Below are positions 220-6,500 of a stretch of DNA of 64,000 bases, piece by piece. Both the position numbers and the translations under genes were made by a program. The notes under the pieces are model-generated. The model worked only from the letters and a program-made list of their open reading frames with translations, made no database searches and had not been told where the DNA came from. Source of the DNA: Blastocladiella emersonii ATCC 22665 (Eukaryota > Fungi > Blastocladiomycota); contig JANHCV010000015.1 of assembly GCA_025594325.1 (NCBI GenBank), forward strand, positions 930,001-994,000. Direction: 5' to 3'. Numbering within the stretch: the first letter of the stretch is position 1; each line of letters starts with the position of its first letter.

Positions 220-1539
220 CTACTCGGGCTGCTGCGCAAAGTTCTTCTGACTCGGCGACGTGACCATGGCGCTGGACTTGATGGGCGATGCGGACGAGTT
301 GCTCCCGTTCTCGGACTGCCCGCCCTTGCCCGAGACGACCGAGGCGCGGTGGTTCTGGGTGGTCGAGCGGCCGGCCGTCGAGTAGTTGGACTGCCCGCCT
401 TGTTGGGTAGTATCACGCTGCGCTTGGACCCGGATCGAAACGAGGTAGTTGGACGCCAGCAAAGCGTTAATTGACATCCAAACCAGCATGATTGTGAAGT
501 ACACGCTCTTATAATCGCTCCACTCCAAGTACAGCGAGTCCAAGTGGATGTAGCAAACCCATACGCAGAGCAAGACCGTCGAAATAGTGGTTGCGCGGAA
601 CAAGCGGGCAACCTTGGACATGGTGAGGAAGGTCGAGTTCGAGAGCATGATGGCCACGTTCATGATCAAGCAGATCCCGAAGCTGACTATGGTGAGAATG
701 GTGAGCGGCACGACGTCGCGCTCGTCGAGCGCACAGAATCCTTTGGCATTGGTGAATGCCGACATGATGGTGAGGTACCTACACGTTCCGGGAAAAGAGA
801 AAGTAAGTGACTTGGCCCGTGACGGTCTCGAGAGTTCCGAGAGTCGGTGAGCCGGCCCGTAACTGTCTCGAGGGTCCCGTGAGTCAGCGAGCCGGCCCGC
901 CGCGGTCCACTCGACGGAAACGTACTGGATAATGTTGGCCACGTTGATGAGCTGCGTGATGCCGTGAAGCAGGTACCGCCAGCGCATCTTGGCCGTGTGC
1001 GACTCGGCCTTAATGGCCAAGTTGATGAACATTTCGGTCTGGAAGAAGATGTTGGCGCTGAAGATTCCGAAAAGCGAGATCGTGGAGCGCAGCAGGATCC
1101 AGAAGTAGCACGCCGAGGGAGAAGACGACTCGAGGCGGATCGACGAGAGAAGTCGGAGCGCGACCAGGACCGTGACAAGGATGCTGAGCTTGCCGAGCCG
1201 CGACTTGAGATACGTGTGCCGGTTCAGCACCATCCACACAAAGTACGCGCATGTCGCGCCGAGTAGGAACCCGTGGAAGACATCGGTGATGTCTACACAA
1301 ACGCACGCAGGACATGTGTGAGTGTGCATGAGTCGAGATTCACGCGGTGCAGTACGCGGAGTCGAGGTCCGCACGGTTCGGGTGCGGGCGAGTGCGCGCG
1401 AGCCGCGATCCGTGGGGTGCGGAACCGGGCGAGTACTCGCGAGTCGTGATTCGCGCGGTGTGGATCCGAGCGAGTGCGCGCAAGTCGAGATCCGCGCGGT
1501 GTAGATTCGGGCGGGCGCACCTTGCGTGACTCGCGGCAT
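220..1539 (-). CDS. 7TM GPCR-like membrane protein, paralog A (3 exons: 1539-1521, 1292-926, 778-220)
   Basis: Removing GT-AG introns 1520-1293 and 925-779 gives MPRVTQDITDVFHGFLLG...IQYLTIMSAF..., collinear with paralog B. It has seven hydrophobic segments, a Cys at the top of TM3 (SACYFW), a Cys in the TM4-5 loop (GFCAL) and a Ser/Thr-rich C-tail. Confidence 0.8.
   Translation of the reverse strand: MPRVTQGAPARIYTARISTCAHSLGSTPRESRLASTRPVPHPTDRGSRALARTRTVRTSTPRTAPRESRLMHTHTCPACVCVDITDVFHGFLLGATCAYFVWMVLNRHTYLKSRLGKLSILVTVLVALRLLSSIRLESSSPSACYFWILLRSTISLFGIFSANIFFQTEMFINLAIKAESHTAKMRWRYLLHGITQLINVANIIQYVSVEWTAAGRLADSRDPRDSYGPAHRLSELSRPSRAKSLTFSFPGTCRYLTIMSAFTNAKGFCALDERDVVPLTILTIVSFGICLIMNVAIMLSNSTFLTMSKVARLFRATTISTVLLCVWVCYIHLDSLYLEWSDYKSVYFTIMLVWMSINALLASNYLVSIRVQAQRDTTQQGGQSNYSTAGRSTTQNHRASVVSGKGGQSENGSNSSASPIKSSAMVTSPSQKNFAQQPE
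807..900. repeat. 40-bp minisatellite (about 2.3 copies) inside intron 2 of paralog A
   Basis: gtgacttggcccgtgacggtctcgagagttccgagagtcg (807-846), gtgagccggcccgtaactgtctcgagggtcccgtgagtca (847-886), then partial gcgagccggcccgc. Confidence 0.8.
1330..1520. repeat. 41-bp minisatellite (about 4.7 copies) filling intron 1 of paralog A
   Basis: Units start at 1359, 1400, 1441 and 1482 (e.g. gagtcgtgattcgcgcggtgtggatccgagcgagtgcgcgc), plus a partial unit at 1330. Confidence 0.8.
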
Positions 1540-1687
1540 GGTCGATGATGTTGCGGTAGTCTGTTGCGGTAGTCTATTCGAGGTCGTTGCGTAGAGTTTC
1601 GTGTGCCAATGGGCGGGTGATGCTTCGTTTCAGATCGAGGAGCGAACGAGCGGGAGCGGGGGCCAGGTGAAGGTGCCACAAGGTGGT

Positions 1688-1717
1688 TGCGTGCTGCGTG
1701 CTGCGTGCTGCGTGCTG
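1688..1717. repeat. (GCGTGCT)n heptamer microsatellite upstream of paralog A
   Basis: About 4 tandem copies of gcgtgct. Confidence 0.7.
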
Positions 1718-2143
1718 GGTCTCCCGCCCTCGGACAATTCACCGAGTGCCTTTGTGGTTTCGTTTCATGGAGTACTGCCTGAACTTGGCCGGATCCAGCG
1801 AGGCCGGGGCGTGAACGGCAGTCGGAATGTACCGCGACGCGTCGCCGTCTCCCAGGCTGTCTCCCGCCCGCCACGAGCGGACGCGTCTTGGCGGCCGGCA
1901 TCGAAAAATGTCTCTCAAGCACGTGTCTCTATATTGGCCTCCAAATGTGGCACTTTTGGGTTCCATACTCCTCGATCACAAAACATGTCGGGACAGGGCG
2001 ACTTTACACCGACTCATGCGGCGATCCTGAAGCGCACAAGTTTACGTCCGGCGATCGCACCCAGGAAGCCGATCGAGTAGGAAGGGGGATATATCCAGCG
2101 CGAAGCTCTATCAAAACACACATCGAGTCTCCTCGCGCGGACC

Positions 2144-3249
2144 CTAGGTGCTGGCCGTGCCGCCGCTCGAAGCGGCTCCGTCACCGCCCGTGGCGGGCAC
2201 GGTCGGCGAGGACGTGCTGCCGCTGTTGACGGTGCGCCCGCCCGCGGAAAGCACGCCAGTAGAAGGCCGGCTGATCGTCCCAGCGGCGGTCGCGGCAATT
2301 TTGCCGTTCGTGGCGCTGCGGGCGGCGCGCGTCGGGTCCTTGCCGAGGGTGCCCATGGGGGCGCGGCCGAGGGTCGGGGTCGTGAACTCGCTCGTGGCGG
2401 GCGACCGGCCGCTGGTGCCGCTCATCATGGCCTGCTTGGACTTGACGCGCATCGCAACTAGGTAGTTCGAGGCCAGAAGCGAGTTCGTAGAGGCCCAAAC
2501 TAACATTACGGTGAACAGCAAACTCATCCAGTCTTGCCACTCGTAGTACAGAGACACGAGGTGGATTCCGATAATCCAGGAACACAGAAAAACGGTCGAG
2601 ATGGTTGTGATGCGGAAGAGTCGGGCGACCTGCGACATGGACGTGAACGTGGACTTTGAGAGCACGAGGCGGAGGTTCATGACCAAGCAGATGAAGAAGC
2701 TGGTGATGGTCAGGACCGTTAGCGGCACGACGTCGCGCTCTTGTAGTGCGCAGAACCCGTTAGGTGAGACGCTGGCCGACATGACGGTAAGGTATCTGAA
2801 TGGGACAGCGTCGAAGTGAGTTCAAGGCGAGAAATGTACTGCCGGGTCGAGATGACGTACTGGATCAGGTTCGCCAGGTTGATGGCCTGTGTGACGCCGT
2901 GAAGGGCATACCGCGCCCGCTTCTTGGCGCGCGGCGAGTCGAATTTGAGTCCGAGATTCAAAAAGAGCTCGGTTTGGTAGAAGATGTTGAGGGCGAAGAT
3001 GACGAATAGCGAGATGGTCGAGCGGAGCAGGATCCAGACGTAGCAGGAGGGCTGCGAGTAGCTTTCCAGACGGATCGACGTGAGGAGCCGAAGGAAGAGG
3101 AACAGGACGACGAGGACCGAGACGCGGGCGAGGCGCGAGCTGGCGTAGGTGTGCCGATTCAAGACCAGCCAACCGGCATACATGGTGCAGGCGCCGAGCA
3201 GGAACCCGTGCACGATATCGGTGATTTCGCTCACGTTTGTGCGCGGCAT
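2144..3249 (-). CDS. 7TM GPCR-like membrane protein, paralog B (2 exons: 3249-2861, 2795-2144)
   Basis: MPRTNVSEITDIVHGFLLG... One 65-nt intron (2860-2796, GTACGT...CAG) joins ORFs 2719-3279 and 2144-2782 into ...IQYLTVMS... It shares the 7-TM layout and both Cys with paralog A. Confidence 0.8.
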
Positions 3250-3546: not shown

Positions 3547-6500
3547 ATGTCGCTGCTGCTCGACCGCCGCTTCATTATTGAGCGCCTGCGGCTCGCGGTG
3601 CTGTCGCTTGAGGACTCGCCGTGCGAGAACGTGATCTCGCTGCGCGTGCGCCGCCCGGCCTCGCCCACGGCGGGCATCCCGGCCTTTGTCGCGTACCCGC
3701 ACGATAAGATTGCCGCCAGTGGCGCCGACGGCTCGCTGTCGCTGACGCTGCAGGGCATCATCCGCCGCGGGTCCGACCACGCCTCGCGCTGGGACGACCT
3801 GATCCACGACGACACCTACGCCGTCTTCCACGACAACTCGCCGCCCGCCGCCATGCTCGCCATGATCCCGCACCACTACCAGGCCCTGCGCCACGCAGAG
3901 GACCTCATGGCTGCCCCCGGCTTCGCCGCCTCGCCCGACCGCAGCGACCTCAGCGGCACCTCGGTGGCGTCGAGCGTCGCTTCAACGGCCGCCCGCGCGT
4001 CCAGCCCGGAGCTCCACCACCCCTCGGACGTCCCGGCTCGCCGCGACAGCGTGTCGGCGGTGCCGTTCCAGCCGCCCGTCCGCCGCACCAGTCTCTACAC
4101 CCCCGGCGTTCCCAGTCTGGGCCGCACCGCCCGCAACTCGCAGCACGCGTACCCCGTCCCGCCGATCCCCGACGAGGAGGACGCGGATGAACCCGCTGCA
4201 GCGGAAGCACCACCCATGGGCTCGCTCGCGACGCACGCGGGCCACCTCCCCGGCGGCGCACCCGCACCTCCGCTGCCGTCCGATGCCAAGCGCTCGTCGA
4301 CGGGCAGCACGTCCGCCGCGCATACCCACACGCCGCGGAATCTCGTGCTGTCGACCAGCGCGGGCGAGGACCTCGAGATCGAGGCCGAGCTGTTTGGCGA
4401 CGAGACCGACTCCAACTCGATGCTCAGCCCGATCTCGGAGCGCGGCACCCAAGGCAGCTCGCGCCGCGCGAGCGCCGAGTCGGTCGTGACCCAGCTGCGC
4501 GTGCGAGCCGAGGCAGCCGGTGCCGCGGGAAGTGAGCCTACGGGCACAATCATTCAGCCACCACCTCGGTACTTGCCTCTCCTGCGAATCCTAAGCGACG
4601 CAAACCTGACGAATATCCGTGTAGTCGCGCGTCCGCGGGCTCCATCAACCAACAGCGGCCTCCCACACCATTGGCGCCGCAGGGTGCGGCGACAACCAAG
4701 GGTCCGCGCAAGTCGCTGACGGGGCTCATGCCGGTCTCGACACTGCCCGCGATCCCGTCCGTTGAGAGCGCGCCCTCGGGCAGCTCCTCCCCGCCAGCTA
4801 CGACCCGCATCGCGGGCCAGGTGTTTGACGCCACCGCCACGTCTACCACTGCCACTCCGACTCCGCCCGCCGCCGATGAAGCCGAGGACCCGACTGACGA
4901 TGTGGTCCTCTCCGAGAGCCTCAGCATGACGAGGTCGACGATCGAGCCCAAAGTCGAACCGCCCGCCCGACCGCAAGCACCCCCGTCGCCGCTGTTTGTG
5001 CGCAAGGCGGTGCCGCCAAGGCCAACGGGTCGTAGCGCGCCGTCGGGGCTCTCGATGCTGCTCGGCAGCAAGTCGGCGCAGCAGAACCCGTTTGCGGCGA
5101 GTTACAGCCGCTACGTATGGGATCTGCCCCGCTGCTAGCCGTACTCCAGGATACTGACCTTGCACGCGCACGTAGGCCGGCAAGCACGCCAAGGACGTGG
5201 TCAAGCTGCACATCCACGTGCCGTACGCCGAGACGGAGCTCGACATCTCGGTGGGCAAAGGCACGACGGTCGAGCAGGTGATCGGGTACACGCTGTTTGA
5301 GTACGTGGAGCAGGGTCTGGCACCCGTCATTGACCCGCCACGGCAAGAGCTCGGGCACTGGGCCATGCGCATCGTGGAAGACGACGGCACCATCGACGAG
5401 GACTTTCCGGCACTTGACCGCAACCGGCCCATCGATCGGTTCCAGTTCGACGCGTTTGCCCTGTGCGAGACGGCCAAGCTGCCGCCACCACCCTCGCCGT
5501 CCGATCCCGCAGCGTCCGCAGGGTCGGGGTCGGCGGCCACGTCGAATGGGATGGGCACGCTGCGCAGCACACGTGGGAGCACGGCGGGGACGGGCGACGA
5601 GAGCCGGCCCGGGTACAACGGGCTGCCCGGCGACCCGAACGCGCTGGGTCCGCTGCCCGCGCCGATCGCCGCCACTATGGGACGGAATGGAACCGCAGCA
5701 GCAGGACCAGGGCCTCGCGGTGACGCGGATAGCGGCATGGGCGACTCGCAGCAGCAGCAGCAGCAACAACAGAAGCTGTTCATCCGCGTGCACCTGTACT
5801 CGACGATCGAGGTGCGACACACGACGACGCTCAACGTGGCACCGACGACGCCGCTGGGCCACATTCTCGACGCGGTGTGCCGCAAGCGCAACGTGAGCCC
5901 GCGCGACTACGTGCTCAAGCTGCACGACATGCGCACGGTGGTGCCGGACCTGACCAAGCCGTTCTCGTCGCTCGGGCCCGTGTCGGAGCTGTTCCTCATG
6001 AAGAAGAGCATCGGGGCGAGCGCGGGCGACATGTTCCTGCGGCCGCCGGGCGAGGAGGAGTCGGCGACGCCGGCGGAGCGCGGTGCGGCGGGTGTGGGGC
6101 AGTTCTTTGGGCGCACGGGCCTGTCGGCGGTGTCGGCGTACAAGAAGTTCACGGTGGTGCGCAAGATGCCGCTGTTCCTCGGGCGGCAGGAGCGCGTGCT
6201 GGCCATCGACGGCGAGTACCTGCACATCCTGCCGACGGACAACAAGCAGTTCTTTGACAGCGTCAAGACCAGCTCGTACCACGTGTCGTCGGTCATCTCG
6301 TGCAAGCAGAGCAAGAAGGTGGCGGCGGTCTTCCGGCTCGAGGTGCTGCGCAACCCGCACGGCGAGCGCGCGGTGCCGAGCCTGTCGGCGGTCGAGGCGT
6401 TCACGGGCAGCCGCGAGGGCAAGACGTACGACTTTGAGGCGGGCAGCGCGGCCGAGGCGACCGAGATCTGCACCGCGATCCAGACGCTGATCCAGTCGGT

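Follow-up and report, generated by a model that had tools for sequence, protein, structure and literature searches.

Tandem seven-transmembrane genes of Blastocladiella emersonii with a predicted GPCR-like fold: candidate receptors of a small blastoclad family

The genome of the fungus Blastocladiella emersonii ATCC 22665 (Blastocladiomycota) carries, on contig JANHCV010000015.1 of assembly GCA_025594325.1, a stretch of 64,000 nucleotides (positions 930,001 to 994,000 of the forward strand; here called the window and numbered from its first letter) in which two spliced genes, gene 1 and gene 2, follow each other head-to-tail on the minus strand between positions 220 and 3249, exactly where a preliminary description, made from the letters alone, had located a pair of seven-transmembrane (7TM) receptor-like genes. 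We hold with high confidence that the two are tandem paralogs of a four-member, blastoclad-restricted family whose proteins have a G-protein-coupled receptor (GPCR) fold, in an N-out/C-in orientation, with one conserved cysteine in a hairpin of extracellular loop 2 (ECL2) and another in the third transmembrane helix (TM3). That these proteins work as ligand-sensing 7TM receptors is a tentative proposal, in which doubt somewhat outweighs belief; our best explanation taken as a whole, the fold and family part together with the receptor mechanism, is one for which the two come close to balance. The layout of the locus is as follows.

220-1539, minus strand: gene 1, exons 1539-1521, 1292-926 and 778-220; 945 nt, 314 aa, TAG stop
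2144-3249, minus strand: gene 2, the upstream one, exons 3249-2861 and 2795-2144; 1041 nt, 346 aa, TAG stop
2861-3249, minus strand: gene 2 exon 1, with the ATG at 3249-3247, encoding MPRTNVSE at the N-terminus, TM1-TM3 and the first half of TM4
2796-2860, minus strand: gene 2 intron, 65 nt, GT..AG, within TM4
2144-2795, minus strand: gene 2 exon 2, with the second half of TM4, ECL2 with its conserved Cys, TM5-TM7 and the TAG at 2146-2144
1540-2143, no strand: intergenic spacer, 604 bp
1521-1539, minus strand: gene 1 exon 1, 19 nt, encoding MPRVTQ and the first base of an Asp codon
1293-1520, minus strand: gene 1 intron 1, 228 nt, GT..AG, mostly a 41-bp minisatellite
926-1292, minus strand: gene 1 exon 2, with TM1-TM3 and the first half of TM4
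779-925, minus strand: gene 1 intron 2, 147 nt, GT..AG, identical in position and phase to the gene 2 intron
220-778, minus strand: gene 1 exon 3, with the second half of TM4, the ECL2 Cys, TM5-TM7 and the TAG at 222-220

All three introns of the pair have GT..AG borders, and exon 1 of gene 2 ends in phase 2 (CA/) at the donor CCA/GTACGT, the slash marking the junction here and below. The splice inside TM4 is confirmed because an intronless paralog on contig 4 (L004:1333-2523, minus strand) reads through the same point in a single frame ('..NLANL.Q/YL..MSA..'), and the 19-nt first exon of gene 1 is confirmed because P0001, the protein of a paralog on contig 18, starts MPRVTQ/DITD. The spliced models give proteins of 314 and 346 aa, instead of the 330-350 aa estimated earlier for both. 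Their C-terminal tails are divergent and rich in small and hydroxylated residues, much as had been described: that of gene 2, encoded by exon 2, is about 95 aa long and Ser/Thr/Gly/Ala-rich, and that of gene 1, encoded by exon 3, is about 65 aa long and Ser-rich.

Hydropathy identifies six strong hydrophobic segments in each protein and a weaker one across the exon junction. This last corresponds to TM4, a less hydrophobic helix spanning the junction, and the full count of seven comes from an AlphaFold2 model computed for P0001, the full-length paralog on contig 18, from an alignment (A2) of 21 family rows. In this model, which has a mean predicted local distance difference test (pLDDT) of 82.8, a predicted template modelling score (pTM) of 0.73 and a membrane core mostly above 90, seven helices are formed by residues 5-34, 38-57, 65-99, 105-133, 152-174, 183-212 and 219-264, a beta-hairpin with strands 134-138 and 143-148 lies between TM4 and TM5, the tail is disordered from about residue 265 and the N-terminus consists of 4 residues. 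The seven segments of the preliminary description are thereby recovered, together with its almost absent N-terminus, which across the family members considered here amounts to 4-8 residues ahead of TM1. The two cysteines that it had singled out, at the top of TM3 and in the TM4-TM5 loop, are found both in the alignment and in the model: Cys68 of P0001 sits at the top of TM3 and is conserved in the family members covering that position, and Cys144 belongs to the second of the two hairpin strands of ECL2 and is conserved in every member covering its position, the most divergent ones included. In the model, Cys68 and Cys144 are placed as in the class A GPCR arrangement and are a candidate pair for a disulfide bridge.

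The orientation in the membrane was deduced from charges counted by eye on P0001, with loop limits taken from the model. The side formed by the intracellular loops (ICL1, ICL2 and ICL3) and the segment after TM7 holds 12 Lys/Arg, and the opposite side holds 6 Lys/Arg and 9 Asp/Glu; the bias of 12 against 6 therefore points to an N-out, C-in topology, and away from the N-in arrangement that would have spoken against a receptor.

When the P0001 model was compared with the PDB by Foldseek, all of the top matches among those listed were GPCRs of class A or class C (NTSR1, OX1R, TRHR, OXGR1 and class C 7TM domains, with E from 3e-4 and structure-alignment TM-scores of 0.4-0.52), and an exhaustive structure aligner likewise ranked GPCRs first, in agreement with the GPCR-like fold suggested at the outset. 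These scores fall off smoothly, so that the model argues for a GPCR/rhodopsin-like seven-helix bundle and not for membership in any GPCR class. The same holds for the fungal pheromone receptor Ste2, a class D GPCR (PDB 7ad3), which is a match at the level of fold only: identity is 8%, its structure score does not stand apart from the scores that unrelated classes of GPCRs reach, and no member of the family has an STE2 Pfam match.

A set of residues is shared along the whole bundle. The N-terminus is conserved as MPR(T/V)xQDITD; TM2 has a conserved Arg near its outer end (L-R-L-L), followed by I-R-L-E in ECL1; TM3 has a conserved Arg seven residues below the conserved Cys and ends on the cytosolic side in Q-T-E-L/M-F, with a conserved Glu. 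Further along, TM4 contains a conserved H-G-x-x-Q and two Asn, TM6 starts on the cytosolic side with R/K-L-F-R/K, the ECL3 region is marked by H-L-D-S and W-x-D/E/S-W/Y-K, and TM7 by V-W-x-x-x-N, which reads on as W-x-x-x-N-S-L-L and lacks Pro and Tyr. A TM6 motif without Pro, L-L-C-x-W, is present only in the core group of Blastocladiella, Allomyces and Catenaria.

The number of copies in B. emersonii was established by searching the 32.65-Mb genome (21 contigs) with N-terminal and C-terminal exon queries, for which the in-frame exon stretches at window positions 2863-3249, 2147-2794, 928-1290 and 223-777 (all minus strand) were used. Both protein halves identify exactly four loci, namely the pair in the window, one on contig 18 (L003, which encodes exactly the NCBI protein H9P43_005731, that is, P0001) and one on contig 4. 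Since the family occupies only these four places, the array does not continue leftwards out of the window, as had been considered possible. Gene 1 is closest to the contig 18 copy, with a core identity of 81-83% and a ratio of nonsynonymous to synonymous substitution rates (dN/dS) of 0.31 in the N half and 0.12 in the C half; gene 1 and gene 2 are 64% identical in the N half and 66% in the C half, above the 55-60% first judged by eye, with dN/dS of 0.34 and 0.23; and either of them shares 54-62% core identity with the contig 4 copy. Judged from these sequence comparisons, gene 1 and gene 2 are tandem paralogs derived from an old duplication, the dN/dS values of 0.12-0.34 indicate purifying selection, and all four copies, with their frames intact, look functional. 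A pseudogene origin is rejected on the same grounds of intact frames and dN/dS well below 1. The contig 4 paralog, an open frame of 397 aa, lacks the TM4 intron that is common to the other three and may be a retrocopy or have lost its intron.

Outside B. emersonii the family is rare. Among 1.84 billion representative proteins, a profile search recovered only 19 relatives at E<=1e-3, whose named sources are Blastocladiella emersonii, Allomyces javanicus, A. macrogynus and Catenaria anguillulae; the remaining ones come from an intron-bearing eukaryote in JGI sample 3300047125 with at least 4 divergent paralogs. Word-indexed protein searches whose query was a single exon, the 21-row profile or a profile limited to the divergent members returned nothing other than family members, a metagenome-contig scan with a four-row alignment gave 161 pattern matches and no relatives, and a search of the PDB with the family profile gave no sequence match at E<=10. 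Pfam scans (E<=10) of the four exon translations and of the 21 members found no family match, only sub-threshold noise (e.g., YfhO, Tmemb_14, DUF2569); the Ste2, Ste3, Git3 and cAMP-receptor profiles, whose motifs had gone unrecognised at first reading, gave nothing at E<=10 in the 21 members, and these scans contain no confident match to a transporter or enzyme family either. The family numbers about 2-5 genes per genome, with several copies in Catenaria, and a tree of the C-terminal halves is poorly resolved, the JGI paralogs and one Catenaria group standing apart as divergent clades. As far as public data go, the family thus appears restricted to Blastocladiomycota and one intron-bearing eukaryote, in line with the unclassified, lineage-specific 7TM family initially proposed. 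Such a family is not covered by the 2025 classification of fungal GPCRs, which lists 17 classes and is based on Pfam and hidden Markov models (PMC12842992).

If the window proteins do act as ligand-sensing 7TM receptors, the conserved features suggest how this could occur. As there is no extracellular domain to receive it, a small ligand would lodge within the bundle of helices, beneath the lid formed by ECL2 and near the two conserved arginines of TM2 and TM3; these two pocket arginines suggest that the ligand might be anionic. ICL2, the short ICL3 and the pair formed by the TM3 Glu and the TM6 Arg would relay the signal to a partner in the cytosol, which could be a G protein or a partner of another kind, and the disordered, Ser/Thr-rich tails would provide sites for phosphorylation-dependent regulation.

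The comparison with class A GPCRs (NTSR1, OX1R, P2Y1R, OXGR1) shows likenesses and differences. The likeness extends to the N-out/C-in topology, an ECL2 folded as a beta-hairpin whose second strand bears a Cys, a further Cys at the top of TM3, the Ser/Thr-rich tail and a charged residue seven positions below the TM3 Cys, which we take to correspond to the aminergic counter-ion position. The differences are these: identity is only 10-16%, the N-terminus of the family is virtually nil, ICL3 is very short, and Q-T-E stands in place of the DRY motif. Several observations weigh against a receptor role. The class A microswitches DRY, CWxP and NPxxY are absent from the family alignments, and no GPCR family of Pfam, PF00001 included, is matched by the four exons or the 21 members; the AlphaFold2 model is that of the paralog P0001 and of neither window gene; the family has few members, in contrast to the expanded families of chemoreceptors; a literature search found no paper naming the locus tags of these genes; and the only named families linked to it by any method, THH1/TOM1/TOM3 and GPR137, are endomembrane proteins without a known ligand.

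This last link defines an alternative, in which the family would belong to the THH1/TOM1/TOM3-GPR137 group as a fungal branch that has diverged strongly and its members would be scaffolds or regulators of endomembranes and not chemoreceptors of the cell surface; we consider it unlikely, yet deserving of serious attention. This group consists of 7TM proteins that reside in the membrane of the vacuole (the tonoplast) or of the lysosome, among which GPR137B is a regulator of Rag/mTORC1 and TOM1/TOM3 are anchors used by tobamovirus replicases. They resemble the blastoclad proteins in consisting of a 7TM region without any other domain, in size and in low copy number. In a protein language-model atlas, the neighbours of P0001 and of P0009, a member 26% identical to it, have clusters named THH1_TOM1-3_dom and GPR137_N as their best named families, with scores of 0.90-0.92 and, for P0009, agreement among 9 of the 10 best named matches; atlas scores near 0.9, however, are reached by 4-10% of shuffled proteins, and the counts of shared features (157-169) lie below the 170 typical of true family members. 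Similarly, residues 21-103 of one member, P0011, align in hmmscan with positions 154-232 of the 273 of PF06454 in a roughly co-linear way (E 0.0065), but the 16.4 bits are below the gathering cut-off of 25 bits, the other 20 of the 21 members give nothing, and about 0.14 such PF06454 matches are expected by chance over 21 scans. Neither the protein-database searches nor the metagenome-contig scan revealed bridging sequences. The P0011 match and the language-model neighbours are to be read as two independent, weak leads and not as proof, and kinship with a group of tonoplast and lysosome proteins that lack a known ligand is a candidate only. The place for such a relative would be free: a PF06454 search of the B. 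emersonii genome reveals no canonical member, and a 2025 survey reports holomycotan GPR137 in nucleariids only (PMC12716839). Should the lead hold, this family would supply the fungal counterpart that the ancient GPR137/TOM1 group lacks. A further term of comparison is offered by 'Remi-sans-famille' (RSF), an orphan 7TM-only family of choanoflagellates and other protists that, like the present one, has no other domain; clustering and predicted structure served to define it, and its structure links it weakly to THH1/TOM1/TOM3 (PMC12716839). Unlike in RSF, the corresponding loop has six residues here (L-E-W-A-D-W) and the RSF motif is absent.

It is far less probable that these are 7TM proteins of some other, non-receptor kind (a transporter, channel, pump or membrane hydrolase, or a PAQR/AdipoR-, microbial-rhodopsin-, GOST- or TRP-like protein). 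The conserved charged residues within the helical bundle would fit such a role, and one Allomyces fragment is named 'TRP C-terminal domain-containing protein' in UniRef, a name that PF06011 does not reproduce; against this, the top structural matches listed by Foldseek are all GPCRs. Each of the transporter, enzyme, rhodopsin, PAQR, GOST and TRP candidates lacks a defining trait. A microbial (type I) rhodopsin has no support, as a Lys in the middle of TM7 occurs in none of the members, in which Lys/Arg of TM7 lie only at the cytosolic end, and hence there is no retinal site; the absence of a shared retinal-binding Lys remarked on at first inspection extends in this way to the whole family. A PAQR/adiponectin receptor would have the topology opposite to the N-out bias found here, and neither a Pfam HlyIII match nor a His-rich metal motif was seen. 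An N-terminus of 4-8 residues leaves no GOLD domain, which excludes the GOST proteins (TMEM87, GPR107/108, GPR180), and the TRP-like domain PF06011 matches neither any of the 21 members nor any of the four loci, its sole weak match in the genome being on contig 8. Finally, a receptor specific for sirenin or parisin, the pheromones of Allomyces gametes, or a mating chemoreceptor orthologous to it, would agree with the GPCR-like fold and with the members in Allomyces javanicus and A. macrogynus, the sirenin receptor being, to our knowledge, not identified, but we find it hardly credible, because purifying selection maintains four copies in B. emersonii, for which we know of no described sexual cycle, several more exist in Catenaria and nothing in the sequence points to a sesquiterpene ligand.

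The two genes of the window are concealed in the public annotation. The model deposited at this locus, KAI9151205.1 (H9P43_009820; P0004, 506 aa), merges gene 2 with gene 1, and its false introns remove membrane segments, for example the TM7 of gene 2 and, from gene 1, TM6-TM7; in its place should stand one gene of 346 aa and one of 314 aa, both with the complete set of seven helices. At the contig 4 locus, the public model P0005 departs from the open frame only in its tail. In Allomyces javanicus, the 552-aa protein P0006 joins a truncated catalytic domain of cAMP-dependent kinase to TM3-TM7 of a family member; two neighbouring genes have probably been merged in this model, and a gene for the kinase catalytic subunit may lie next to a member of the 7TM family in Allomyces. 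In JGI sample 3300047125, the paralogs on contigs L005 (Ga0499901_0237) and L006 (Ga0499901_3010) are annotated as split fragments, one mislabelled as a 'magnesium-transporting ATPase' and another as an 'NDP-sugar epimerase'.

Tandem repeats also occur at the locus, and both introns of gene 1 consist largely of minisatellites. The minisatellite of gene 1 intron 1 covers positions 1351-1513 with 4.0 copies of 41 bp, and gene 1 intron 2 holds 2.2 copies of a 40-bp repeat at 814-899; the 65-nt intron of gene 2, at the same position as the latter, is devoid of a minisatellite. In the spacer, a perfect 7-bp repeat, TGCGTGC, is present in 4.3 copies at 1688-1717, and a 13-bp repeat in 2.1 copies at 1549-1575, immediately upstream of the gene 1 start codon. 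On the other side of gene 2, and divergent from it, a gene on the plus strand (3547-4716) encodes a stretch of 390 aa that is Ser/Pro/Ala-rich and has no Pfam match.

B. emersonii is a model for the sensory biology of zoospores, for example in phototaxis and chemotaxis. The published survey of its sensory genes is based on Pfam and therefore cannot have caught this 7TM family. The boldest form of the receptor proposal would see in it an unrecognised class of fungal GPCRs, exclusive to the flagellated Blastocladiomycota, through which zoospores or gametes sense a small, possibly anionic chemoattractant by means of the arginine pocket of TM2 and TM3; we think this improbable as a complete statement, and, if it is true, the 17 classes currently listed for fungi (PMC12842992) would be joined by a further one. 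Our claim is a more modest one, founded on the fold and on the phyletic restriction, with the sensory function as a candidate only: a set of four genes, restricted to one phylum and with a confidently predicted GPCR-like fold, may be considered as candidate chemoreceptors of blastoclad zoospores or gametes.

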